A stretch of 55,547 bases of DNA from Chara braunii. Taxonomy: Eukaryota; Plantae; Charophyceae. Shown one piece after another: positions 27,777-51,589 of the stretch (position 1 is its first letter; every line of letters begins with the position of its first letter). The notes below the pieces were generated by a model. It saw only the letters and a list, made by a program, of their open reading frames with translations, did no database searches and was not told the DNA's origin. The stretch is from the NCBI GenBank assembly GCA_003427395.1, contig BFEA01000007.1, positions 76,760-132,306 on the forward strand, read 5' to 3'. A program made the translations under genes and the position numbers.

Positions 27777-28490
27777 AAATAAAGTGAAAACAAAAAGTAA
27801 AAAGTGAAAAAAAATGAAATAGTGAGTGGCCGAGCACGTTTCGACACCTTCATCTTTGGAGATTTGTAATGTTTTTTTGGATAAGCAAAATGACTTCAAA
27901 ATTTATAGGTATGTACCTCACATCATAGAGAACTCTTAAGAAATCATCAGAAAGATTTGGCGTGAGCCAAACCCCTTCAGGTTCAGACCCCTAACGTTCG
28001 AACGTACACAAGTCCGTCCGCGGGCCTACATACGTACGGGTTTGTTAAACTGTATATATATATATATATATACACAGTTGCCATGCCGAACGTTCGAGGG
28101 CCCCCGGGCAGACCCCTGAACGTTTGGGCGTTCGGGGCTCGAACCTAAAGGGGTTCGGTCCCCGCAAAAACATATTTCGGGGCCTAAACATTTTTTATTT
28201 TTATTTTTTTTTGTGACATGTTGTACACGCATATAAAATTTTACGGTATTTTATTGAGCCAAAAAAAAAAAAAAATTGTCAAAGATGACGGTGTTCAAAG
28301 GTGCTCGGCTACTTAGGTTTTTTTTTTCTTCACTTTTTACTTTTTTTGTGGTTTTATTTTGATGCCTCAAATATGTTATTATTTTTTGAAACTTTTTGCA
28401 TGAGTTTTGTAGCATGTGAAGCACACATATGTAAAGTTGCAGGGCATTTGGCTATGCCAAAATAAATTAAAAACCTCCAAAGATGGCGGT
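27777..28490. mobile_element. CAGGG-family MITE fragments
   Basis: Continuation of the split MITE, then a new copy after the (TA)n at ~28053-28072 that is truncated at 28490. Confidence 0.75.
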
Positions 28491-31360
28491 CTACCCACCT
28501 TTCCCCAGTTCATCCCCCTTATCTGGATTCAAACAACATAAACAATAAAAATAGATGAACTTCCTAGATGCAACTTCTTTACTTAATTTGAGTTAAATCC
28601 AAAAAGAAACAGAGATTCATAAGGCCACATGCATACATAGCATACAAATACAAGGATGCTGTACTTTAGTGGGTTTACACATGAATAACTTGACGAATTG
28701 CTATACATGAAAGTTCCCTGCCCGAGAACCTTGCATAGGTTCCGACAGAGTTCCCACAATCGGTGGGTAGATCTCCCAGAAGGCCTTGATGCAGTCCTAC
28801 GGGTTTCCAATTTCCCCCTGCCGCCTCCTCTCCGAACCACAGACGAGAATAAGAAGGGTAGAAAAAAGGGTTTCAAACTCTTTAAATATAAGAAAGGGCC
28901 AACTCAACTTGTATGAGAGGGTCTTGGTCTCTTAGAGCGTGTGTGGGCTTCGCAATAGTGGCCAAAAACGCAGTAAGGCAGTTAACCCTCGATTAAAATG
29001 CCGAGTAATGACCCTCTGACTAACCTTCAAGCCGCAACAATGACGCCCTCCTTACAGAGCCTAACCACTCCCTTAAGTCGTGATGTCGCTTCCTCTAACC
29101 AAACAACAGTCACACAGCCTAGATAGTCTGCATTGGAATAGAGCACACCCCCTGTGCTTTATTCGAGATGCAGGCAAAACGGAGCAGAAACTTCACAAAA
29201 CATTGCACGCACAGCAACCGTGCGCAACAATAGAGCACCGTGGCAATGCACAAAGTTAAACGCAGTAAGTTAATAACATCACACAATAAGGTTAAGCGGC
29301 TAAGTTGACTAACATTGCAGACGCACACAACAAAGCTCAGCAAAGTGCACAACAAGTGCACTGTGAGTCTAGAACAGAATGCTCAGTGAACTATTTTGCA
29401 AAGTGCATAACAGAGTTGCTCCGCGTGACACAGGACAACAGACAGCAAGGTGCACAATAGAGCAACAAGTCTAGTAAAGAACGCAAGGTCGTGTAGCAGC
29501 ACGCACAGTGAAACAGTTCAATAGCAATACTGCAAAACTCAGTAAGTAACAGTAAGGGACGACTAAGGCACTGCACAAATACAGCAGCGGGGAGCAGCAA
29601 CAAGAGACGTAGCAAACACTGACTCTACAGATCACCGCCACAACCAGGTAAGCGCCCACACCACCGACGATTTGCACCGATAGTCAAAATGAACTAATCT
29701 GTGAGGCATTGAAGAATCGATTGACCATGCTCTCATAGTCCGTACTCGCACTAAAATTCTGATTCCACTAAGTTACTGCCCCCTCTGTTATGCAGAAGAT
29801 CTCAACTCTTGTTGAGCCTGCCGTAAATACTTGTGCTGTCTGCTAACAAGTGTACTTCCCCAGCCTAATTTCTAAAAGACAAAGTTGCTCACCCTGAATG
29901 ACAAGCACGCCAATATTGGTGCGAGCCTCTACCAGTTCCCCTCTTATCCTGTCATGCTCAGACATTGCTCACTGTCCTTCGGCTCCCAATAGGCACACTC
30001 ACGCTCAGATGTTCTCATAGCAGATCATCGTGGCTGGCGGTAAAGTAAATAGACCGTGAAAACGTTACTTCTCCTTTCTATCCGAACTTCATTTCTCCTC
30101 AGGCCGAATCTTCCTCTATTACATGCATGTGCTCCGCCTCACTTCAAACGGGAAGCAGACATGTCTGCGCGGTTAGCGCTATGACGACGGCTACCACGAC
30201 GTGGAAACAAACATCGTGGAATCAAGGACGATGGAAGTGGCCATGATGACTGTGACGATGAGCTCGATCCAAGAGCGGGAAGTACCAACGCAATGAATGA
30301 TGACCATCATTGGGACGAGGAGCGTGGTAATGAGGACTACGACCGTGAGGAACACAAAAAAAAAACGTGCTACGATGAAAATCTTAGGCATGATCACCAA
30401 ACAGATGGCACCATGGCACGAATCTACCCCACTACTCATTAACTGTGCGAAATGAGAATGGATCCAACACGAGATCCTGTCGGGACAACTACGGCCTCAT
30501 GTAAACAATGACCATGAGGACAAAGGAACATGATCACAGGGAGGAAGATCGTCGGGAGGATTGCGGTCAACTGGTTAATGACGAGGACGACCAGATGGAT
30601 GATGATCATCAGAATGATGAGCGAAGGCACATGGTAATGAGCCTCAATAGTAAACAAGGCGATTAATAGGACGAGAACCTGCATATCGAGCACCATCTGA
30701 ATCGGAATGGTGAGCGACTCTTAAGAGAAACGTATCCCGTAAACTAGTATAAGCAAGAGCGCCAAAATGAAGATGGTGACTGCTCGAAGCATGATAGTGA
30801 CCATACACGCGGAGTGAAGGGGAATACAACCTTGGTCAGGAATAGTACTGACCACGGTCATCGACTTCGCTCCTTCTTGCTCTCCAAATATGCCAAAATG
30901 ATAATAATTTCCCACTACAACGTGGAAAGCTACATCACCCCTTAGGCCTTACTCCCGCTCGCTCCTGCGAGGTACGTGCCTTCCATCCTCCCTTTGCATA
31001 TAGACTCGACCTCTCCGTTGTTGTCAGTATTCTCTTTGCTTGCTGATATTGACGTTAACTCGCTCCAAAAACACCGCGCGGTAAAAAAAAAAAAAAAAAA
31101 ACGACCATGGGAACCTTTCTCGATTTTTTAGAGTCATCCTTGCGCAGGGTCCATACTAATCCTCTCCGAATTGTTCCAATTTTAACGGATGTCCCAAAGG
31201 ACTGCCTCGAGGGTACGGTCATGGGCATTCCCTCGAAACTGCTTCGTTCCCAGCAATTCAGAATTGTAGTATTTTACTTAATATCTCCTTCCTCTGGAGC
31301 CCGAACTCAAGTCTACATTTCAATAGTCCACGGGTGTACCAACCGAACTAAGCCAGTCAG
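28490..31360. mobile_element. U6-bearing retroelement-like segment, copy 1
   Basis: 28490-28975 is homologous to 36287-36770, and 31100-31360 to 38578-38790. Confidence 0.65.
31083..31202 (-). ncRNA. U6: U6 snRNA-derived sequence (variant or pseudogene), full length with T19 tail
   Basis: Minus strand GTCCTTTGGGACATCCGTTAAAATTGGAACAATTCGGAGAGGATTAGTATGGACCCTGCGCAAGGATGAC..AAATCGAGAAA..T19; ACAGAGA box altered; AGC->AGT. Confidence 0.9.
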
Positions 31361-34300
31361 TGTCACACCCGGTCCCAGTTCCAACACCGGTACCACAGCC
31401 TAAAAGTCTCAGAGTGGAACAACAAAATAATAATAATGATAATAATAAAATAAAAGGAAAGATTTGAGACTATACCGAGAAGGGGGGGGCTGTCGACACA
31501 CCTTTGTCTCACCAGCTTGTCCCCAATCAGGGATCGACGATAAATCCGAGGGTGCATGGTCCCACTAGACCCTCCCCCTCGGCTCCTTCAAGCTGCTTCA
31601 CCGCTCCTGTGTTGTCGGTCGCTAGCCGCGATCCCCAAACCTACCTGATGAAAGTCCAATACCGTAACCAGTAGTGTTAGCCCCAAGGTTGACACTAGCA
31701 ATTGCGGAGTTTCTTATAAAGGGGCTCAACACACTTGCGCAACCCTATTGAAACGCCCAAAGGCCAGACCTTGGCCTACCAGTCAAATCCACAACCGCCA
31801 GAGGGTGTAAACACGTCGCACTGAGCCGCCTGGTACCGCTCAATGCTGTTGTACGTTGTTGAGCGCATCGGTCCCGCACGGGGACCCTCCCGACCGCGTC
31901 ATGTAGGATTTTGCAGGACTTGTCGCAGAGAGCATTTGCCGCTCCGGCCGAGTGCGCAAGCCGTACCTCTCGCGAGCCCCTACGACAAGACAGGGTCACG
32001 CGAGGCACCGCTTACCTCTACCTGCGGGAGTTGTCACCATCCCTTGGGTGGGTGTATCCCCGCCGAGCTACTGAACCACATACGAAGGTTTTTCGTATGC
32101 AATTGCGGAGGTGGCCCAGCCAAGGGCGTTTCTCATTCGCTGTAGCATAGGGGGTACGCGCAGTCGAACGCCCAAAAATCGAACCTGCATGTGAATCGAC
32201 GCACTGGGGGGCTGAGGCCCCAAACGCGACTCGGTGCCGGTCGACTAGGACGCGTCACACACACCACGCGTTATACCACAACACTCACATCCACAAACAC
32301 ACGACGCAACAACACAACAATACAACAACACTCCTAGTCCCTTTAGTATCCAACCCATAACTTTCCGAAGCGAGAGTCAGATAGGCCTCGCTCACTGAAC
32401 TTGGCATAAAAAGTTGGGCGGGCGCATGACCCTCTCATATCAACTAGCCATGAGAGCATACGCAAGCAATTGCAACGATGGAGTACTACATGGTACCCAT
32501 AGTCGGGCAATCCTCAATAGTCTCGAGGGTCATGTTCGACACTCAAGTGTCGGCTGATAAGCGCTTTGAGCGGTTAATCTCTCGACCCTAAACAACCGCC
32601 AAGTGCGGTTGAAGACCACACCCTCTTTTGCACCCTGTGGAGAGGGGTTGAGTAGACAGCTTCAGGGCTGTCGTGGCGGCCAGAGATCAAGGGGTTTGAC
32701 TTTGATGGTTGTCACGGACTACAACGTCCAACTATAAAAACTCAAAAAGGAGGCGAACGCAGATAGAGAAAGAGGCTCACCCCCCTTTTCCCCTCTGCCT
32801 AGCCCATATACCAACTTGTACAGCCTGATAGGCCTATCAAATGGAAGAGGCAGGTCAGTACGAAAGGTGCGTGCGGATAATGCCCAAATCAGACCCATGT
32901 GCAAACCGACGTTCGAAACGTTGGAAGCTCGTATGCAGATCCCCATAGGTCGACTAGGACTAGTACTCCGTTCGCGCGTTGCTTCGCATTACCGGAGCTC
33001 GGGTCTACTTACCACAACATACTTTTGTCCTTTCTGCTCGACCCATAACTTTCCAATGCGGAGATCGGTAAGTGCTGCACGCAAGGTTTAGTATAAAACC
33101 GTGCAGGCGCAGGACCTACACATACAGACCAACAATGCAGTCCTACGTAAGCAGTCGTGGTGACGGCGCTTTTGTGGTGCCCTTAATCGAGTGGCCTTAT
33201 CTGAGTCATGGGGTCGTTCTCGACGCTCAGGCGTCGACTGAAGCTCGCCCTAAAAGGGGGGGAAACCTTTAGCGAGTGCAAAGGCGGCCTGAGGGCTTTA
33301 CCATCTTCTGCACCCTGAGGTGTCCCAAAGGGTGCGGGGTATGATGGTCCCTAGGGCAGAAAGGAATTCGGAGCGGTGGTGAGTTGTCTGGTGTACCACC
33401 AGCGACGCGCTAATCCTTCCGCCCGGAACTTTATCGTTCCCCCAAAAAATTAAAACAAGAAAAAAGAAAAGGAACACTCATTGTTAGCAGAAGAAAACAT
33501 GAACACCCCGTCGGACTGAGTTGTTGGGGGACAACCCCTCAGCCTCGCGGCGCGTCTGTCTCCCAGGTACAGCGTCGTGCGGCAAGTAAATCAGCCTCAG
33601 CGCGAGGGGTGATCCCCTCCGCGCTGAGCCTAAGACTTGGGACGTCCTCGACAAGGACCTCGAATTCCAGGCTCAAGACTAGCGTCCGACCAATTAAACC
33701 GGAAAAAGGATGACGTAGACATATGGTCGCATAGCCCCATGAGGGTTATCTGAACGTATGTCTACTTTAACTCTCACAATAGCAGGACGAGGAAAAGGAC
33801 AATCACAAGTAAAACAAAGAGTTGCGTGGTAGTTTACTCTCACGACAGTTATGTGGTTTGCCCATCTGGATCCAAAAACATAATCATTCAACAGGAATCA
33901 ATCGAGATTCTTCCAGACATACCTGCAATCATACGCACGACATTCAAACAACATCGCACACACTAAAGGGGTCAACTTTTCAACCTTCTACAACTCACAT
34001 CCTGCCTTATGCACATAAGCCCGACCATTTCCCCACCATTCCTCAACAAAAATACTCAATCTTTAAGAAATGACCATTTAGAAAAGATCAAGGTGAAAAC
34101 CAAAAAAAACATAAAACCCAACAAGGGTCAAGGCCTTAGGTTGAGAAGCAGAAGAGACAGGAAAGTTGAGTCGTGAACCGACGAATCGGCAACCGACCTC
34201 TTATCAGTGATAATAGAAAAGTGATCCTTCAAAGGATCAGGACGAACAGATCAAACCTTCAAGCGAAACACGAAAACCTTCATCACAGTACAGACAAAAC

Positions 34301-34910
34301 AAAGAACCACTACTATGTTCATGCCAAAGGGAAAGTACATCCCAAGTCGTAACCTAGCTCCTCTACTACTCTCATTATCAGCTCTCCTTACTAGTACCAA
34401 GTGACTCCTACCTGAAAATATTCTAACTCCTCAAATTCTACGAAATTTCGGCAGCGCTTCCCGTAGGAAAAGTGCCTTCTCAAAATTTTTACGAGCCAAA
34501 AAATGATTAACTCTTTCAGATTTACAGAAATTTCGGCAGCGCTTCCTGTAGGAATAGGAGGCTGTCAAGATTTGTACAAAGCTGAAAACAGAATGACAAA
34601 GCAAAACTATACTTGGGACCATTTTTTGACACTTGCTTGATAGTTAGGATTGAAGACAGTTTACACGATCCCTTTTCAGAAGATGGCATCATGAGTTATC
34701 GTCAATTCTATCTTCCAGTAAGGTCAGTCTTATCTTTATCCCAAACTTTCCCTCCCATCATCCATCTCATCTGCCTATAGCTCCAGCTCTCGGCGAACAT
34801 CTAAAACAACTAACATATCCAAAATATGCCCCAAAGTGAGAGCCCACAAGCATGCATAAACAAACATCTCTTACAATCCCACATCGATTTAGGCCAAGTA
34901 GTTCGTTACA
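31361..34910. mobile_element. LTR-like block (probably Ty3/gypsy); orientation and ends uncertain
   Basis: Starts TGTCACACCC, candidate end CGTTACA; PPT-like AGAAGGGGGGGG before TGTCGACA at 31491; repeated CATAACTTTCC and AAATTTCGGCAGCGCTTCC motifs; no clean TSD or PBS. Confidence 0.4.
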
Positions 34911-34960
34911 TCACTTAGTTCCTTCCCTTCTTATGTCCCCCCTCACTTATGACATACGAT

Positions 34961-36250
34961 CAGACAAGACCCTAACTTAAGGGTATGCCTGACCTACCTA
35001 AGTAAACAAGTAAAGTACGCATAATTGGACTGCTCATAACTTAAGGGTATGTCCATAACATGATGAAACGTATGTCCAGACTGCCGTAGCTTAAGGGTAT
35101 GCCCAACACAACATAAACTATGAACATGAAGCATATGACCAGACCGCCCTAACTTAAGGGTACGCCTGACTTCTGCCTAACTGACGAAATGAAGCATAAA
35201 ACTAGGTTGCCCTAAGTTAAGGGTATGCCTAATTAGCTTTAAACAAGTTACATAAGGCATAAAATTAGACTGCCCCAACTTAGGGGTGTGCCTAACCTGC
35301 CTAACACAAGTACAAACGACAAAAGGTCGGACCGCCCTAACTTAAGGGTACGTCCAACCTACATCACATCAACGACAAGAGCATATCGCTAGGCCGCCCC
35401 AACTTAGGGGTACGCCTAGTCTGCCTGAACAATTTAAATTACCTAAGGCAATCCGATCAAACCGCTCTAACTTAAGGGTACGCCTTATCTGCCTGAACAA
35501 GTACAAACGACGTATGACTAAACCGCCCTAACTTAAGAGTACGCTTAGCCTTCGCAACGTCAGTTTAAACAACCATGAATACTCTTTCACAAACTTTATA
35601 ATTTCCTTTCTTTTTAGGCAGATGGTCAGACCTACCCAACTTAGGGAGACATCCAACCCTGCCTTGTGTTTAGAAGGGAAAATAAATGAAGATTTATACT
35701 AACTCTCTGCACTTTTGTATTATCACGAGCATAAGACTGAACCGCCCTAACTTAAGGGTACGCTCAATCTGCCCGGGTTACCTTCACTTTATATTCTTCA
35801 TTTGTCTCTCTTCTCTTTTTGTTCTACCCGACTTACTGACTGGCTTTCCCAACTTAGGGTGCCCGGTCTGTCAGCTGATATAAATTCCTATAATATATAT
35901 CAACTTCTGCATTTTTGGTTGACTTTTAGTTCATAGCTTATGGCTAAGCCGCCCCAACTTAGGGGTACGCTTAGTCTTATGCCCTTGTTCCCCTCAGAAG
36001 AAACACACACAGAGCCAGGGCTACGCAACTTAGAATATCCTAGCTCTGTTTTCAACAACCCAAAAGAAACATCAGGATTCTGAGTCCTCCCAACTTAGGG
36101 TGTCCATCCTCCTGTTCAAAAACCCCAAAAGGAAACAAGTGGTTGCACCATCCAACTTAGGATAGTCCCAACCCAAAAAGATTATACATTCAGCCCAGCA
36201 AACATAAATAAAATACTGCACTGAACCCACTCCACTTAGAGGGATTACGC
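34961..36250. repeat. Array of ~18 stem-loops with conserved AACTTA loop
   Basis: Core CGCCCT-AACTTA-AGGGTACG at ~50-68 bp period for 10 units, then ~60-110 bp; compensatory changes in the stems. Confidence 0.9.
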
Positions 36251-36494
36251 CTTGGGTTGACCCGGTCAAACACATGCAAAACACCGTTCTCCAACCTTCC
36301 CCCAATTCATTTTGCCTGAATTCACTCAACGTTTATTTGAACTCTCATATATATCTGTTTATTTAACTTTTTACAAGACATGTCCTGACATACATCAAAA
36401 TAAAAGTAATAACCTTTCATAGTTATATTCAGATACCCAATGGAAATTATAGTTAGGGGAAGGGATCACACGTGTCAGACGAAATTATACCTGA

Positions 36495-36770
36495 AGTTCC
36501 CTGCCTCCAGAACCCCGTCTGGGCTCCGGCAGAGCTCCCACAATCGGTGGGTGGACCTCCCACAAGGTCTTGATGCGGACCTACGGGTTGCAATCCCGCC
36601 TGCCGCCTTCCTCTCGTAACCTTAGACTAGACTTAGAGTAAGAAGGGCAGAAGTAGGGGTCTTTTAGTCTCTCTGATACAAGGAAGGTGCGCTCAGACTC
36701 GCGGGAGAGGGCCTTGAATTCTTCTATCTCCTGTGGGCCCCACAATGATGGCCAAACCCACTGTCAAGAC
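36495..36770 (-). pseudogene. Decayed ORF remnant shared with 28712-28975
   Basis: SRPCGRSTHRLWELCR versus SRPSGRSTHRLWELCR with mostly third-position differences; strand not certain. Confidence 0.45.
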
Positions 36771-37256
36771 GCAACGCATAGATCCCTAGATAGACTTCCA
36801 AGTTGCGGCAGCCACCTCTCTGAGGCCCCCGGCGTGCGCAGCAAGGTGCGCAACAAAAATCGAAAAGCAGCAGAAAATGTGCCCTCCAACCTGTGCACAG
36901 TAACCGAGCACTGCTGTAATGCGCAGCGCAATGCTATGCATCCCCAAGCAGCCGAGATACCGACTGCAACAGTAACCTTGTGTCCATCAAATAATCCTGA
37001 CAGCCTCAGAGTTCAACAACCTCATCTCCCCCAACATCCTACTCAGTCACCATTGCTAGCGTTGTATCAGCCATAGTCCACCAAGCCAAAGCGTACAGGC
37101 TCAAACTGCAGTAATTGCAGTTTCCTCCCATACTGCACGCCAATAGTGGAAACACCAAAGGGCACGGTACCGCACGACGTATCAAAGGATACAGTCCCAA
37201 ACGTACCAAATGACTCGGAGTATGGAATCCCCAGTAACAACAAACAAGTAAGCCTC

Positions 37257-37258
<2 letters not shown>

Positions 37259-37331
<73 letters not shown>
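37259..37331. repeat. (CT)n microsatellite
   Basis: Seen directly. Confidence 0.95.
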
Positions 37332-37334
<3 letters not shown>

Positions 37335-38577
37335 TCACGGATACTTGGCGTTCTGCATTGCTATGTACAAGCAGATAGAGGGACTAAGTCGAAGGGACAA
37401 AAATGCAGGTCGAGCGAGATGGGAGTCAGCGAGAGGCAGCTCCAGTATCACCAACCAATACTGCAACAACGATCTGGCGTCTTCAAGAGGATAGCTGGGT
37501 TGCAGATGACGAGCGTGAACGCTGCAAACACACCGGTGGCTGCCCTCACGTCACTTTCATCGATAGTAGGGGCAAAATCGAATGAATCTTTCACTGGATC
37601 ACGACCATATGCACGCGACTTCACCTTGAGGTAAGTGTTCGCCCATTCTGGCTTTCTCATCCTTCTGCTTTCCCTCTTCCATCAATAGGATGAGCGGTTC
37701 TCGCTCCACCACTTTTAGGCATATATAAAAAAAAGGAAGTAACAAAATGTGAATCAATCTCTCGCTAAAAAGTGGAAAGATATCCTTCCTACAATTTGTC
37801 CCCGTTATGCACCGCGCAGCCCTCACCACTCGTGCAGCTAAATCCACTCACCTTATCACCGATCTGAGCTCAGCATCTAATGCGCGTCGCCTAAGAACCT
37901 CCAATCCGAGCCTTCACTCACTCGTTTTCGCTGAGAAACGAGCGAGCCATGCGATTTTCACTCCCGTTTTTCCTTCGTCCTTCTCCTCGATTCCTCTGGT
38001 GCAGCTACTTCATCAACAATCTCAAAAACTAACTACCAAACTCTAAATCTAACACCGCTACCACGTTCGCCACTCTTTAAAACCCCTAAAAACGACTCCT
38101 CTCTTGTTTCATTTCCCATACTACCGTATCCACGCACACGAGGCTCCCGCGCACAACTTTTTCCTATTAACTTTTTCTATACTAACTTTGATCTAAAACT
38201 AACGTTCGATTCGAGGTTATCATAGTCCAAACCCCCTACTTAGAATTTTATTTCGCTTAGTTCTATCAAGAATCGAGCGAGGTCACGATCTCCTCTCCCG
38301 CCATAGCTCGTTTCTTTTTGACATGTATCCGGCGCACTACGTCGTTCGGGTTCACCCCACCCTTGACTGCGCCCGTATCCTTCGTTAGTGGCTCGTCACT
38401 CCACCTTGGCGCTCGTCGTGTCTTTCCTACCTCCTTCTCCTCACCTCCGCCGTCTTCACCTTCATTCACCCTCCTGTTGCCCTTATAGCGCAGCGCCCAA
38501 CAATCAGCGTGGTCGAGAGGACGCGCAGCAACGGCAGCTCACCGCATGGCCACCCCAAGTGAAAGTATCGGGCTGCT

Positions 38578-38663
38578 CCCCGACTTTATACGTGTCACCC
38601 GGACGCAGGCGCCATACTAATCTTCTCTGTATCGTTCCAATTTTAACGGATGTCCCGAAGGAC
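38578..38663 (-). ncRNA. U6: U6 snRNA-derived sequence (variant), 3' end replaced, no T tract
   Basis: Minus strand GTCCTTCGGGACATCCGTTAAAATTGGAACGATACAGAGAAGATTAGTATGGCGCCTGCGTCCGGGTGACACGTATAAAGTCG; intact UUCG 5' stem and ACAGAGA box; AGC->AGT; ISL altered. Confidence 0.92.
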
Positions 38664-38793
38664 TGCTTCTTGCGCAGAGACCCAGAGTCGTCGGGTCTGC
38701 TGCCTTGGGTCAACTCCATCATCTAGAGTCGGACAGAGGTTTGTATCTAGGCAGTTCTTGTGTGTACCCACCGAGCCCAGCCTGTTGACTCAC

Positions 38794-38842
38794 CATTAAC
38801 GTCGTACTCTTCAAATGTCCCTTCCGAGCGCTTGCGTGCCAT
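38794..38842 (-). CDS. Putative first micro-exon (MARKRSEGTFEEYDVN) followed by a GTGAGT donor
   Basis: ATG at 38842, 49 nt open, consensus G|GTGAGT at 38793. Confidence 0.35.
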
Positions 38843-40524
38843 AGTCAACGTACTAGCTAAAGCAGCTATCACTTAAACTTGATTTATTCAAAAGCAGAAA
38901 AATTAACTGGCAAAAGCGTCAGCTTGCAACCCGAAAAAAAAGAATCATGTGCGCCGTAGACTGCGAGCCCACACACTCTCTACTTCCAGTCAAACATGCT
39001 ATTGGCCTAAAAATAAATATTACCGCGACTCGCACGGTGTACTGATTTTCAAATCAAAACCTATTTCCTATCACTTACAAAAATCACGGCGGATACCTTT
39101 GCAAGGGTATTCATGTCGACACCACTTTTAAAACTTATTATGTTTCTTGCACTTTTTCGCAATTTCTCGTCGGGGATCCATAAATTTATGTAGGACTTAC
39201 ACGCGCCTTAGTGGCCACACTAGGAATTTTGTTCGACAGTTGAGAATTCCAGGATTTGCGGCCATATTTCTCACTGACGTGTCCTTTCTTGCAAGTGAAT
39301 GTTCCTAAATTCAGCCGTGAAGGCTCTATGAAATTTCAGTAGGGATGTAAATAGGCGTAGGATTTTCTCGTGTCCAATCTCGCGCGAGGAATTTTTTTAT
39401 TTTTTTTCTCAATCTTGAATTATTTTTAGAGCTCGAATGGACGACGCATGACTCTTTCAGTGCCTTTTTGTCTCTGTGTCGCCACCATGCATGCAAACTT
39501 CCCTCGCTTCCGGCTATGTCTCATGTCATCTTCACTTTTTTTTTTTTCGCGCCTTCTTTCCTTCACCCATAAGTGTTTTCAATCCCTCTCGCTTCACACT
39601 TCTCTCCCTATCCTTTTTCGTATGCATTTTTTTCCACTCCGCACTACTCTTTGCACCCTCCTTCTCACTTGCATCCCCGTCCAGGAACTCCCTGTCGATT
39701 CTGCCAAGAGTGTTCGAGTCATCAGACTACATTGTGAAAGGAGGATACTCCCCTCCCATTGTAATCTGATTATCTACAAAGGAACTCATGAGGATCGATA
39801 TGGCTTTCGCCGGGCATTTAACCCTTACTCTCTCTTCACTCCCTCCTGCATCCACCTCATTTTCTCCCATCTTCTATCTTCCTCTTCGGAACTATCAAAT
39901 TTGCAAGTGCATCCGAAAAACTCTCTCTCAACTTATCTGTCACCTTCAAAGAAGTCGTGGCTAGATGATGTGTGTGTACGGCGAGTCGAAAAGTCATGAC
40001 GAGCTAACTGTAGTTTTGCAAGACCGTGCTCGGGGTGGTCGTGGCAGATTGCGGGATTTGGGCAAATCGATGTAGAAGCTGAGTTGGCGGAGTGGCGATC
40101 GCTATGGTGTGGAGGTTGGTATGTGGCGGTTGGGATCCTCAGTACCTGGATAAGGAAAGTGTGTGTGTACGAGTGTTTGCATGGCTTTGACCATAATTAG
40201 AGAGCAGAAGGCTTGCGCGCCTTGATCTTCGGTTCCTTCTCTTATTCTGGAAGCTTTTCCTCAAAGCTATTTGTATGCTCATAACTCCACTTTCCTTAAT
40301 CCTCTTCTTTGGTCAAGCTACGACTTTGTGCACATCTATTATTTTCTTTATGAATGCTTGAATGTTCAGATGACTCCCTCGATCCTACCAGCTCCTCAGG
40401 TCTTATCCTGCTTGTCTCGTTGAAGTCCATCGGATCTCGCAAGGACAAGTATCGTTGAATTTGAGAGACCAACATACTCAGGTGATCTTGGTTTCTCCCC
40501 CTCTTTGCTCCTTAGCATCTGATG

Positions 40525-41945
40525 GTTTATGCATGAGTGATTTTTTATCCCTATTTGTCTTTGATCATCGCAACTCCTTGGACGAATCCACGGGAGCATC
40601 GAAACAAATCATGTGAAAAATATTTTTCATGCATGCATCGATTGAGTTGTTGCTATGATAACAAAAACATATTAGGATACTGATATGAGTATTCTGATGC
40701 ATGCTTAACTTGCTCGGATGAATGATGATCGTTTTCTTAATTGGATCGAATTGCATAGACCCACGCCTCGGATCGGCTTGTACGATGGATGAAAGATATT
40801 GAGAACCTAGTGTTGTGTTTGTTTATTCCTTTGATCGAACAATGGATTGACTAGACATACACTACGTTGCAACTTGTATGAACCCCCGTACGAGTACAAA
40901 TTTTTTTGTGCTCGTACGCTACTCATACGGTACTTGTACACTAGGGACCCATACGGCTTTTTGTTTTTTTTCTTAAATTATAATAAGAATCTGCAGATGA
41001 CGCTCAACCAAATGTTGTTTGTTTTCTGATGTTGCAACAATTTTTTTTTCGTAGGTTTTTTATGATTTTGTTTTTTTTTCCTCATACAGGGGTGTACAAG
41101 ACGTACGGGTTTCCATACAGATATTATCTGACAGTGTACGTTTCATACCGAGAGACCCCGTACGTCTACGTTTGATAACGTATCACATTCAGCCTTGCTT
41201 ATGCCTTGTAGACCGATTACCCCGATCCGACTAGGAGTCGACTTCCTGTATTCCCACACGCCTATTCCCATATAACGAGGAAAAGTCCCGTGTATGTGAC
41301 CGAGACAGGAAAAGTTGTCACCAACTTCAGCGGGCGCTATTATTTTTATACCGAAACAAAGTACTCAGGGTTCGTAGGTGTTGGTTTTATCATTATTGTG
41401 CATGAGTGATCTCTTATCGCTATTTGTCTTTGATGATCGTCACTCGTTGGGTGAAACTCACCGGAGCATCGAAACAAATAAGGTGAAAGACATTTTCTCG
41501 TATGCAGCGATTGAGTTATTGCTCTGATGACGAGAATGAATAAGGATTCTGATATGGTTATTCCTTTGCATGCTTAACTAATTGTGCAAATGAATGATGA
41601 CCGTCCTCTTGATTGGATCGGATTTCATAGACCCACGCCTCGGATCAGCTTGTATTATGGATAGAAGATGATAAGAACATATTGTTGTGTCTATTTATTC
41701 CTTTGATCGAATAACGGATTGAGTAGATATACACAATCGGCCTTGCTTATGCCATGTGGACCAATTACCCCGATCCGACTGGATTCAACTTCATGTATTC
41801 TCGTGACGTCCATTCTTATATAACGAGGAAAGGACACGTGTATGAGAGTGAGACGTATGAGAAGTTGTCGCCAAGATCGGCGGGCGCTATTATTTTCCTC
41901 CCGAAACAATGTGCTCAAGATTCGTAGGCGCTGTTTTTGTTATTA
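40525..41945. repeat. Old ~550-bp tandem duplication; first copy carries a MITE
   Basis: GCATGAGTGAT..CTATTTGTCTTTGAT at ~40530/41400; ATAGACCCACGCCTCGGATC at ~40756/41627; CCGAAACAA at ~41351/41901. Confidence 0.85.
40862..41183. mobile_element. hAT-type MITE (CTACG family), older copy
   Basis: CTACGTTGC...ATAACGTAT; degenerate TSD GACATACA/CACATTCA; absent from the paralogous unit at ~41730. Confidence 0.8.
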
Positions 41946-43373
41946 TTGATACTCACTTTGCCTCGTACTCCTTATTATTGACTTTTAAAGAATTGATTGT
42001 CACCCTGTGGACGGCGGTGACACCTCATTGGCCCAACGCTGTGTAGTGATTGTCGTCACACCGAACGTTATCGGAAAAAGGGGTTCCACTACCGGGCACA
42101 TAGCGAGGACGAACACAAGGAAATAGCGACTAGGCTGAGGCCGTCCACGTCGAATTTCGTCCTCTGTAATGAATGACACCAAAACTTAATTCGAAACGAG
42201 ATCCTACGTGCGTACCCCTGCCTTTCCGTTCGAAAAGACGTCGAGTAACCCGCATGGAAACTTAAAGATATTTTTTGGATTAAACGAACGTTTGAAAGCA
42301 TCACACGCTATTTCTTTCCCGCGCCGCCATGACCATTTCTCATTAAAACTGGAACCATACGACGAATTTAAGTTACATCTGTGTCTTCACACTCAATTTT
42401 TCAAAAATCATTGGCACACCCCATTTTATTGTTTTTCAACGGCTTGTTCCGCATTTTTTGTCCTTCCGACCGGAAGATAGTACAGGGCGTGAGGTTGAAC
42501 GCCACACACTCCCACAATCATTTGCAACTTGTAGTGCAGCAGTAGACTATAGTCGTCTCTCTCGAATGCAATGCACCCTCATCATCGTTGTACGAGACCA
42601 GAAAGATAGCTTGTATATATCCACAATGGGGTTGAATTGTGTTCAAGGGACGACGGTAGTAGTACGCAGCACTTTGTTGGAAACCTTCCTTACTTGCTGG
42701 TCGGCATCTTGACCTAATCGACCAAAAACTTATAAAGAAGAAGACCGTTTGGTATCGTCCAGTTCAATCAACCCATCTCAAAACCCCATAAGCCAAGACT
42801 ATGGTAGCCCTAGATTTGGTGACCCAAAGTTTAAGGTTCAGATCCACAATTTTAATGTCGCCTAGTGCAACAATGGTGGTCCTCCATGCAAAGGTAGCGG
42901 AGCACCCGCAATCGATGTCAATATATTTTCTAAAAACAACAAGCGACAAACCTTTGGATTTCCTTCAAGTATTCTTCAAGTGCGCTCCTGTGGCTTTTTT
43001 TAACCCCCGAGGGCATTCATTGTAACAGTTCAAGTTGCAGTTTCTCATCAAAACCAAGCCTCTGAATCAGGTCTAAACTGCACATGCACAATCACTAAGC
43101 ATCAACTGAAGTTTCCAATCAACGCCTTGACATGCATCAGACTCATTTCTTAGCTCATGTCCATGGAGGATGTGGACGATAGGCCTCTAGGTAGGTAGGT
43201 AGTCTTCCAATCGTTCTTCATGCAGTGTGGTATGTATCATGGCCTACCAAGGACTTCGGGGGGTTATGTCCCCGAGGACTCCTACCCCTGACCACCACCC
43301 TTGTTTGGAAATAAGTCTTTGCACATAGGACCAGACCTGAGGGTCCAAGCAATGGTGCATAAGATGCTATTGT

Positions 43374-50326: not shown

Positions 50327-50794
50327 GAACCAAGTCAGAAAAAGAAAAGGTATTAATTTCTACCCTATCATTCTTCCAACTTCCTTCTATTACATTTTCG
50401 TCCTCTTACTTTCTACCACTTATCAAAGTTTTAATTCCTCAAACATGACGTTTTAAATTTTGAGTCACCCTATGGGGTTTATACTCAAAACCAACCTTTG
50501 GTGGTATTAGATAGTAGAAGTACCATTTAAACGTTTTATGAGACAAGGTGTAAGGTAGAACGTTATATGCGTTACTACCATTTAACATTTACCATGTTTC
50601 TACAAACTTCTAACAAAAGTAAGCGTAGAGGTGTAGGAACTTGCAAAATTTATATCTTATTGTGATTTCTTAGAACGCCATATGCGCTACCACCATTTGA
50701 CATTTTCCCTTTCCCGATGAACTTCCTAACAAAAGTAAGTGACAAGTATGAACATGCATAACTCATATTTTTTTCTAATATATATATATATATA

Positions 50795-51589
50795 CAAGGT
50801 TACCTGACCGACCGTTCGGGGGGCCCCGGGCTGGCCCCCGAACGTTTGGGCGTTCGGGATCCTGTTCGGGGGTTGAACACCTCCAGGTTTGGCCCTCACC
50901 AAAAAATATTTCGGGGCCTAAAAATAAGTTTTATTTTCTGAATTTGTTTTTGTGAGTTCTGTACAATGTAGCTTACACGCCTGTGAATTTTTAAGCTATT
51001 CTGCCAATCCAAAAAAATATTAAAAATCGTCAAAGATGGGGGTGTCAAAACGTGCTCGCCCACTCACTATTTTGTTTTTTTTCATTTTTTACTTTTGTTT
51101 TTCACTTTATTTCGGGGCCTAAAAAAAAATATTATTTTTATAAAAAAATTTTAATGAGTTATTGATTATGTAAACTATATATCTGTAAATTTTCAGGGCA
51201 TTTGTCAATGCCAAAAGATAATTAAAAGTCGGCAAAGATGGCGGTGTCGAAAAGGTGCTGGCACACTCACTCATTTTAATTCTGTTTTTATTTTTTCTTA
51301 TTTTTATCATAGTGTTTATTTTCTGTATTGGATTTTTAATTCAAATTTGGTAACGAATTTGGATGTAGTGCCCAGGCAAATGTTGTTTAATTTATTTTTC
51401 TCCATAACATATGTTTTTTTCGGAATGTTTTGATTTTTTTTTATTTTTATTTTTTTATTTATTATTTTTTTTTTTTNNNNNNNNNNNNNNNNNNNNNNNN
51501 NNNNNNNNNNNNNNNNCTTCCGAAGGGGTCCCGTACGTTTGGGCGTTCGGGTTCGGGCGTTCGGCCCGTCCCGAATGCCGGTAACCCTG
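50795..51589. mobile_element. CAGGG-family MITE in (TA)n
   Basis: CAAGGTTACC...GGTAACCCTG with TATATATA on both sides. Confidence 0.88.

Follow-up and report, generated by a model that had tools for sequence, protein, structure and literature searches.

U6 snRNA-derived segments inside the very long LTRs of a Ty3/gypsy lineage in Chara braunii

The window analysed here is a 55,547-nt stretch of Chara braunii DNA (assembly GCA_003427395.1, contig BFEA01000007.1, positions 76,760 to 132,306), whose Ty3/gypsy family content is LTR sequence only: LTR A, interrupted by LTR B (Table 1). Among C. braunii loci, eight LTR starts carry the same start motif as A, and with B excised, positions 1-534 of A align contiguously to positions 45594-45092 of family locus L002. 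LTR B is colinear with the LTRs of L002, L009, L011, and L012 (84-88% identity to L012); its 3' end is intact (...GCTCAACA at 31857) and its 5' part is deleted. Since B is nested inside A (39121 to 28490), the A/B pair is not a local duplication. A sequence-only reading of this DNA had delimited two diverged homologous segments, 28490-31360 and 36287-38850, and these boundaries were wrong: the remainder of LTR B occupies 36286-31857, and LTR A also takes in 31361-31852 and 38852-39121. The divergence that it described for the middle of the segments was confirmed, no alignment above chance being found there. Three further readings were ruled out. The purine-rich motif at 28490 and 36290 does not mark an element end, since it lies within the LTR; TGTCACACCC at 31361 is not where an LTR ends, since alignments cross it; and no 7.5-kb unit was duplicated in tandem, since the sequence to the right of B does not resemble 31361-36286. 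Exact look-up of ten window ORFs in the protein collection found none of them, and Pfam gave no meaningful match on the window ORFs.

Table 1. Features of the nested LTRs (positions are those of the window).
Feature	Position	Strand	Basis or remark
LTR A, first 270 bp with family start motif (TGTCG...)	38852..39121	-	start motif, alignment
LTR A, remainder	28490..31852	-	abuts unrelated palindromic repeat at 28490; 3' half missing
LTR B, solo, 7 kb, inserted in LTR A	31857..38847	-	colinear with family LTRs
ACGT, candidate 4-bp target duplication of B, one copy	31853..31856	.	
ACGT, candidate target duplication of B, other copy	38848..38851	.	
LTR B internal repeated motifs	34412..36160	-	common to other family LTRs
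U6-derived segment in LTR A	31102..31202	-	Rfam RF00026, 69.8 bits
U6-derived segment in LTR B	38562..38663	-	Rfam RF00026, 65.1 bits
19-T run after U6 in A	31083..31101	-	left over from the U6 oligo-U end, or a possible terminator for Pol III
tRNA-SINE head in A	31286..31355	-	A-box-like 31343-31355, B-box-like 31296-31306
tRNA-SINE head in B	38715..38787	-	A-box-like 38768-38778, degenerate B box 38725-38734
Conserved non-coding structured block in A	28692..28966	-	ends at donor-like site near 28705
Conserved non-coding structured block in B	36478..36756	-	ends at donor-like site near 36490
Decayed sense LSU rRNA fragment in LTR A	29655..29867	-	RF02543, E=6e-5, below gathering score

The repeat to which A and B belong is an LTR, 5-8 kb long, from a Ty3/gypsy lineage of C. 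braunii that encodes proteins. At least 150 pol-related gene models of this species belong to the lineage, and the 120 pol relatives listed in our protein searches, for which single stop-free pieces or stored proteins served as queries, were all from C. braunii. The family was sampled at 11 C. braunii loci (8-9 lineages) picked via protein homology and not via U6. Direct LTR pairs, 91-97% identical and with the ends TGTCG...CGACA, were found in L005, L006, L008, and L010; the LTRs measure 5.1-8 kb with gag-pol in between. The gag region is followed by the order PR-RT-RH-INT (Pfam on P0036, P0027, P0073, P0088, and P0079), and Pfam detected neither a chromodomain nor a second RNase H family in these fragmentary gene models. 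A primer site of the TGGCGCCG.TGCCGGGG type lies 2 nt past the LTR end in L002, L005, L007, L008, L010, L011, and L012, and the polypurine tract is clear in L010 only. ACGT flanks B (5' end deleted), whereas the flanks of L010 mismatch; NCGN-type flanks occur at several family insertions. The domain order and the non-Met primer site resemble those of Athila/Tat and Phygy elements (PMC6317226), a likeness judged by features and not by an RT tree; these groups are defined by the lack of a chromodomain, an extra aRH in Tat only, and the NCGN preference in Phygy. OTA elements have very long LTRs with internal repeats as the Chara lineage does, and the NCGN-type flanks of several insertions recall Phygy, but Phygy elements are short. 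The Chara LTRs reach about 8 kb, compared with about 5 kb in a survey of non-chromoviruses (PMC6317226).

Both minus-strand U6 copies noticed in the sequence-only reading match across the whole Rfam model. In A the ACAGAGA box and the AGC triad are both mutated; in B nt 1-47 are identical to the majority of copies, the triad reads AGT, the 3' part is diverged with an altered stem-loop, and no T4 run follows. Their upstream flanks are homologous, as had been stated (local score 40 vs. ≤34 in 500 shuffles), and the shared motif described there is derived from a tRNA-SINE head. The reported absence of USE and TATA elements upstream also held for these land-plant motifs, which may not be those of Chara. 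Because the junction between SINE and U6 is the same in A and B, and both carry a C-to-T change in the AGC triad, they probably descend from one capture.

A sense U6 piece was present in the LTR, 0.3-1.5 kb from its start, in 8 of the 11 protein-selected loci. All 12 clear copies are in sense orientation, and no U6 was found outside family LTRs in the approximately 425 kb examined. The copies reside on eight other scaffolds and, in L008 and L010, in both LTRs of single elements; U6 is therefore internal cargo of a many-copy family, as had been proposed, and is not limited to the two copies of the window. Contrary to what had been claimed, its position is not fixed: in other copies the distance from the LTR start to U6 ranges from 342 to 1455 bp. 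U6 is absent from the L012 and L007a LTRs and almost gone in L004, by loss or replacement. The copies of L009 and L011 are identical at 98/101 positions, inherited within the subfamily; L002, L005, and L008 each have a decayed U6 trace plus a fresher copy downstream, and in L010 nothing but a near-pristine 3' half is present, next to an antisense SINE head. The single capture previously suggested thus probably holds for A and B but is not supported for the whole family, and we concluded that U6 was apparently picked up more than once and then spread with the element. Metagenome scans with a U6 variant and the LTR start motif as queries gave 0 matches.

Conservation was assessed against the majority sequence of the same LTR copies, which is not the true Chara U6; this majority sequence restores canonical U6. 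Conservation of nt 1-48 was 0.76, compared with 0.75 for the best (core) block of the LTR and chance level for the U6 flanks, so that the 5' half has not decayed at the rate of its surroundings; the U4-pairing part is more diverged (0.53). U6 identity is uncoupled from the identity of the LTR blocks (rho -0.20), and the tree of U6 copies has a star-like shape. Different parts are kept in different lineages (copy-by-region heterogeneity, p about 0.002): B has no difference in nt 1-47 (p=0.004), L009 keeps the stem-loop region, and L010 the 3' half. The 5' stem-loop is 91% paired, and the internal stem-loop 69% with no covariation; neither fold z-scores nor pair counts backed a by-eye hint of compensatory evolution in the latter. 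In no aligned copy are ACAGAGA, AGC, and the internal stem-loop all intact, and they are broken in differing ways. A run of at least four Ts at the U6 3' end is kept in 6/8 copies (background 11%, p=5e-5 in a window chosen post hoc), and the identity of the preceding 20 nt is at chance.

The LTRs also carry other sequences. The element common to A and B that had been read as an ORF remnant does exist as a 280-bp block (73% identity) but is non-coding; it lies 2.1 kb from U6 in A and 1.8 kb in B. Every frame is closed in at least one of the 11 copies, indels of 1-2 nt occur, and codon periodicity is absent (134/119/116); two copies alone hinted at third-position changes, a hint that was gone with 11 copies. 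The block folds with covariation, and from this alignment it is predicted to be a non-coding structured RNA with a splice-donor-like end. At least one gene model, CBR_g36417, has an exon made of this non-coding LTR block. The LSU rRNA fragment of LTR A was not found in other family copies; further captured pieces in family LTRs include a type III hammerhead and a group II intron end, and several of the non-U6 cargo pieces are antisense.

The reading that we prefer, with a probability of roughly one half (0.52), is that the LTR U6 was repeatedly captured, and refreshed, from co-packaged U6 during reverse transcription. Retroviruses package U6, at about one copy per RSV virion, as given in a review (PMC4752605, citing Giles et al. 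2004), and this packaging offers the proposed route, by which U6 is accessible to the reverse transcriptase. Particles of the Chara element would co-package U6 snRNA, and the reverse transcriptase would at times switch onto it, giving the first insertion; homology with the resident copy could then help to replace or re-add U6 parts, and between such events the copy of each lineage would decay. The insertion site, in the first 1.5 kb of the LTR, is probably U3; U6 is copied into both LTRs of an element and spread by each transposition. Under repeated refreshing the apparent conservation of U6 stems mainly from renewed copying of a host RNA that is itself conserved, so that no function is needed, although a weak benefit to the element may exist beside it. 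Antisense cargo is impossible by template switch; therefore LINE-type insertion at the DNA level also fed these LTRs and could have delivered U6. Two further observations count against refreshing: the survival of the T-run despite the chance-level 20 nt before it, which fits selection, and the extensive pairing that persists in the 5' stem-loop.

The main rival to refreshing is a selected Pol III cassette, in which the SINE A and B boxes would drive a SINE-U6 RNA of ~200-250 nt ending at the T-run or, by analogy with 5S in Cassandra, would recruit TFIIIC and keep the LTR open; taken together these forms are plausible but unlikely. Cassandra and Helenus provide a precedent (PMC10886601), an A/B-box-like head lies directly 5' of U6 in A, B, and L007c and 5' of decayed U6 in L002, L004, and L005, and most copies retain the T-run. 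This head is homologous to a free SINE with a poly-A tail and target duplication (about L002 8885-9070). Its A box region is conserved; the B box, however, does not exceed the columns around it in conservation and is degenerate in about half of the copies (B, L004, and L005), the head is absent from L006, L008, and L012 and antisense in L010, and LTR B has no T4 run. ARAGORN at default settings found no tRNA, and its relaxed calls on the SINE heads were inconsistent and not used as evidence. It is rather doubtful that an LTR-borne Pol III unit (tRNA-SINE promoter, U6 body, and T-run) expresses a U6 mimic that targets host factors handling U6, or affects the element's own replication, and that is renewed from host U6 upon decay.

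A cis-acting role, in which the U6 5' half near the 3' end of the genomic RNA would aid Gag binding, export, or stability, seems improbable: the constant sense orientation, a 5' half as conserved as the core block, and the selective uptake of U6 by retroviral particles (the same review, PMC4752605) speak for it, but L010 keeps the 3' half alone, L012 and L007a have no U6, and U6 lacks the covariation of the core block. The splicing decoy or variant spliceosomal RNA proposed in the sequence-only reading could draw on full-length Rfam matches in several copies and on the conserved 5' half; with at least one of its motifs broken in every aligned copy, the greater divergence in the U4-pairing part, an internal stem-loop poorly paired and free of covariation, no USE or TATA (again land-plant motifs that may not be Chara's), no match by eye of the variant U6 boxes to donor sites of the element itself, and U6 missing from some LTRs, we regard that function as very improbable. 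U6 retrocopies are common in genomes (PMC4476161), but a locally duplicated U6 pseudogene or independent retrocopies are scarcely credible here and are refuted for the family as a whole by the scattered scaffolds, the paired LTR copies of L008 and L010, and the subfamily inheritance in L009 and L011.

Each U6/LINE-1 chimera is a single, dead insertion in which a LINE piece carries U6 at its 5' end. As in the Chara element, U6 was joined to a retroelement by reverse transcription in these retrogenes (PMC4476161, PMC11838501), but the Chara U6 is internal to the LTR and amplified with the element. The SINEU elements of crocodilians (PMC4494074) likewise have recurrently added snRNA-derived parts; there U1 or U2 forms the 5' head of a non-LTR SINE, whereas in Chara U6 sits behind a tRNA-type head in an LTR. 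Closest in arrangement are the TRIMp3 elements Cassandra, Helenus, and Ajax (PMC10886601, PMC10853983), which also have small-RNA-derived sequence inside their LTRs, possibly by SINE insertion as in the Chara lineage, and Cassandra follows changes in the host RNA gene, a further likeness. TRIMp3 elements are non-coding and 0.3-1.3 kb long; their small-RNA parts derive from 5S or tRNA, and their promoter boxes are conserved. The Chara element in contrast has LTRs of 5-8 kb, gag-pol, and U6, with boxes often degenerate and a dispensable cargo. The term 'snRNA' does not occur in the Helenus/Ajax paper (PMC10886601), the retroviral review describes packaging and not U6 fixed in a replicating LTR (PMC4752605), and the searchable literature, which covers few subscription journals and leaves Repbase outside, yielded no account of snRNA, U6 included, within LTRs or in Chara.

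With this family, small-RNA-bearing LTRs are no longer confined to short non-coding 5S/tRNA elements but extend to a large family that encodes proteins and carries a spliceosomal RNA. The family supplies a natural many-copy record for testing the old proposal that co-packaged U6 is copied by LTR-type reverse transcriptases and recombined into their own genome, and a way to separate selection from repeated refreshing. Of the U6 matches in Chara, many are probably cargo of LTRs and not genes.

A profile built from the ~280-bp conserved block shared by the two U6-bearing copies in the window (28692-28966 in segment A, 36478-36756 in segment B) retrieved the gene model CBR_g36417 at a second C. 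braunii locus, L002, which holds a third copy with the same order of upstream motif, U6 5' half and shared block. Beyond the block, L002 is colinear with window positions 36196 down to 31857 and runs through the end of the LTR into a primer-binding site, followed by gag and protease; thus the window repeat is the LTR of a retrotransposon. The element has the domain order PR-RT-RH-INT and LTR pairs of 5-8 kb (91-97% identical, termini TGTCG...CGACA); with these and its primer-binding site it shows most of the defining features of a Ty3/gypsy element, and it works as one. Its clade is left unplaced, OTA and Phygy features both being present (PMC6317226). Searches with gag and pol matched 66 and at least 150 proteins, respectively, and all those listed were from C. 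braunii. LTR B, inserted in LTR A, is 84-88% identical to its closest relative, at locus L012. The window also matches the C. braunii assembly in how gaps and single Ns appear, which makes this species its most likely source. Family members are also nested or in tandem at L004, L007 and L008, and at L007 each of the two LTRs represents a separate subfamily.

Both minus-strand U6 copies proposed by the sequence-only reading were confirmed by full-model Rfam matches. Segments A and B have four parts in common: U6 (82% identity), another motif located 100-150 bp upstream of it, the shared block (73%) and a short motif rich in purines; outside these, their alignment was not above chance. The upstream flanks had been described as homologous, which holds for the motif common to A and B; this motif is a tRNA-type SINE head. 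A free copy of the SINE in L002 has a poly-A tail, a target duplication and both A and B boxes; in A, B and L007, the stretch immediately upstream of U6 aligns to the head and body of this copy. The shared block, previously taken for an ORF remnant, is non-coding and folds with covariation: 97.6% of cells are paired, and in seven pairs both partners have changed (6/500 shuffles; one helix possibly reflects an alignment shift). It terminates in a GT donor-like site in 11/11 copies and matched no Rfam family. We infer that the block is part of the transcript leader, in which case U6 would lie in U3; for the structured part (36478-36640, minus strand, and equivalents), candidate roles are those of a leader, a packaging signal or a dimerisation RNA. 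CBR_g36417 takes it as a 46-codon exon, probably a wrong annotation.

Among 11 loci picked by protein homology regardless of U6 content, eight carried a U6 piece inside an LTR. U6 reached the Rfam gathering score in L008 and L010 (both LTRs each), L009 and L011, and was detected by BLAST or by an HMM seeded with several of these copies in L002, L005, L006 and L007. L004 has a U6 trace only, L012 has no U6, and one L007 LTR has rRNA pieces at the U6 place. All 12 clear copies, the two window copies included, are in sense orientation; U6 lies 342-1455 bp from the LTR start where that start is present, and always upstream of the shared block where the block exists. In about 425 kb, no U6 turned up elsewhere than in these LTRs. 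These data show that U6-derived sequence is cargo of an abundant LTR family and spreads with it. L009 and L011 hold the same derived U6 (98/101 identical), so U6 is inherited within subfamilies; it was gained at least twice by the family, contrary to the single capture first proposed. Cassandra, Helenus and Ajax likewise carry small-RNA sequence in the LTR, but the Chara element falls outside their size and non-coding criteria (PMC10886601); it is neither a U6/LINE chimera nor SINEU. No report of U6 in LTRs was found in the searchable literature, of limited coverage.

U6 had been expected to be better conserved than its flanks. Among eight lineages, a small sample, mean identity was 0.76 over U6 nt 1-48, 0.53 over nt 49-80 and 0.28 over nt 81-102; the shared block reached 0.75 and the U6 flanks 0.29-0.38 (shuffled 0.32-0.36). 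The expectation is borne out in the 5' half, yet U6 does not vary as one constrained element would. Different lineages keep different U6 parts (p about 0.002): LTR B has 47 U6 nt without difference, L009 keeps the stem-loop region and L010 the 3' half only. U6 identity did not track LTR identity (rho -0.20), and the majority sequence of the copies, the reference used in place of the true Chara U6, restores canonical U6. L002, L005 and L008 each hold a decayed remnant at the ancestral site and, 140-430 bp downstream of it, a fresher copy (by eye; weak HMM support). Departures from the majority sequence within nt 1-80 are most often A-to-G (35/129).

We favor, at a probability of roughly one half (0.52), a reading in which element particles would co-package U6 RNA, as retroviruses do (PMC4752605), and reverse transcriptase would insert U6 sequence and later refresh the resident copy, so that conservation may reflect re-copying more than function. 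Selection on a SINE-U6 Pol III unit is the main rival, at a clearly lower probability: the SINE sequence lies next to U6 in A, B and L007, and a T run of at least four at the U6 end, kept in 6/8 copies vs 11% background, points towards selection. A cis signal within the element's genomic RNA, with which the uniform sense orientation is compatible, appears unlikely. The splicing decoy suggested earlier is very improbable: ACAGAGA, AGC and the internal stem-loop are kept together in no aligned copy, and U6 pairing showed no covariation. The U6-bearing LTR family is real, and any function of its U6 is putative.

Features of the window and of related C. braunii loci (L numbers; locus-internal positions)
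Feature	Location	Strand	Remark
LTR A start	39121	-	broken after 270 bp by LTR B
LTR B	38847-31857	-	ACGT at either side; 5' part missing
LTR A resumption	31852 down to 28490	-	cut off at 28490
U6-derived segment, LTR A	31102-31202	-	Rfam, whole model, 69.8 bits
U6-derived segment, LTR B	38562-38663	-	Rfam, whole model, 65.1 bits
LSU rRNA fragment, segment A	29655-29867		decayed; weaker Rfam search, E=6e-5
Broken retroelement	8284-12674	-	
Palindromic repeat family	27777-28490, 49-716, 21700-23300, 50778-51453		abundant; central AT microsatellites; MITE-like
Different repeat, about 1 kb	39154-40240; L009 20492-21559, 26304-27258; L010 1917-2999		60% identity
Two tandem units, about 550 bp	40527-41948		80% identical; first unit split by 320-bp repeat
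tRNA-type SINE family	L002 8885-9070 (-); 73461-73533, 74527-74645		intact boxes
Type III hammerhead ribozymes	L010 5955-6009 and 19240-19294 (-); L012 21868-21922 (+); L001 20935-20974		
Group II intron end	L003 5944-6032	+	42 bits; just past donor-like site of LTR block
Piece related to L003 intron end	L002 77944-77986		
LSU rRNA pieces	L007 2780-3135; L003 22133-22299		common to two LTRs

Other cargo in the U6-bearing family's LTRs comprises pieces of LSU rRNA, a type III hammerhead and a group II intron end. The rRNA pieces of L007 and L003 are common to two LTRs, so rRNA cargo is inherited too. Their Rfam-scored piece is antisense, with a short sense piece seen by eye, and the L010 hammerhead is antisense inside both LTRs (50.7 bits); antisense cargo indicates that DNA-level insertion occurs as well. 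Elsewhere in the window, a broken retroelement gave no Pfam match, and its ORF (9160-10404) matches C. braunii reverse-transcriptase-type gene models at only about 35%; it looks Penelope-like. The about 1-kb repeat adjoins family elements in the window and at L009 and L010, and the palindromic repeat adjoins LTR A at 28490.
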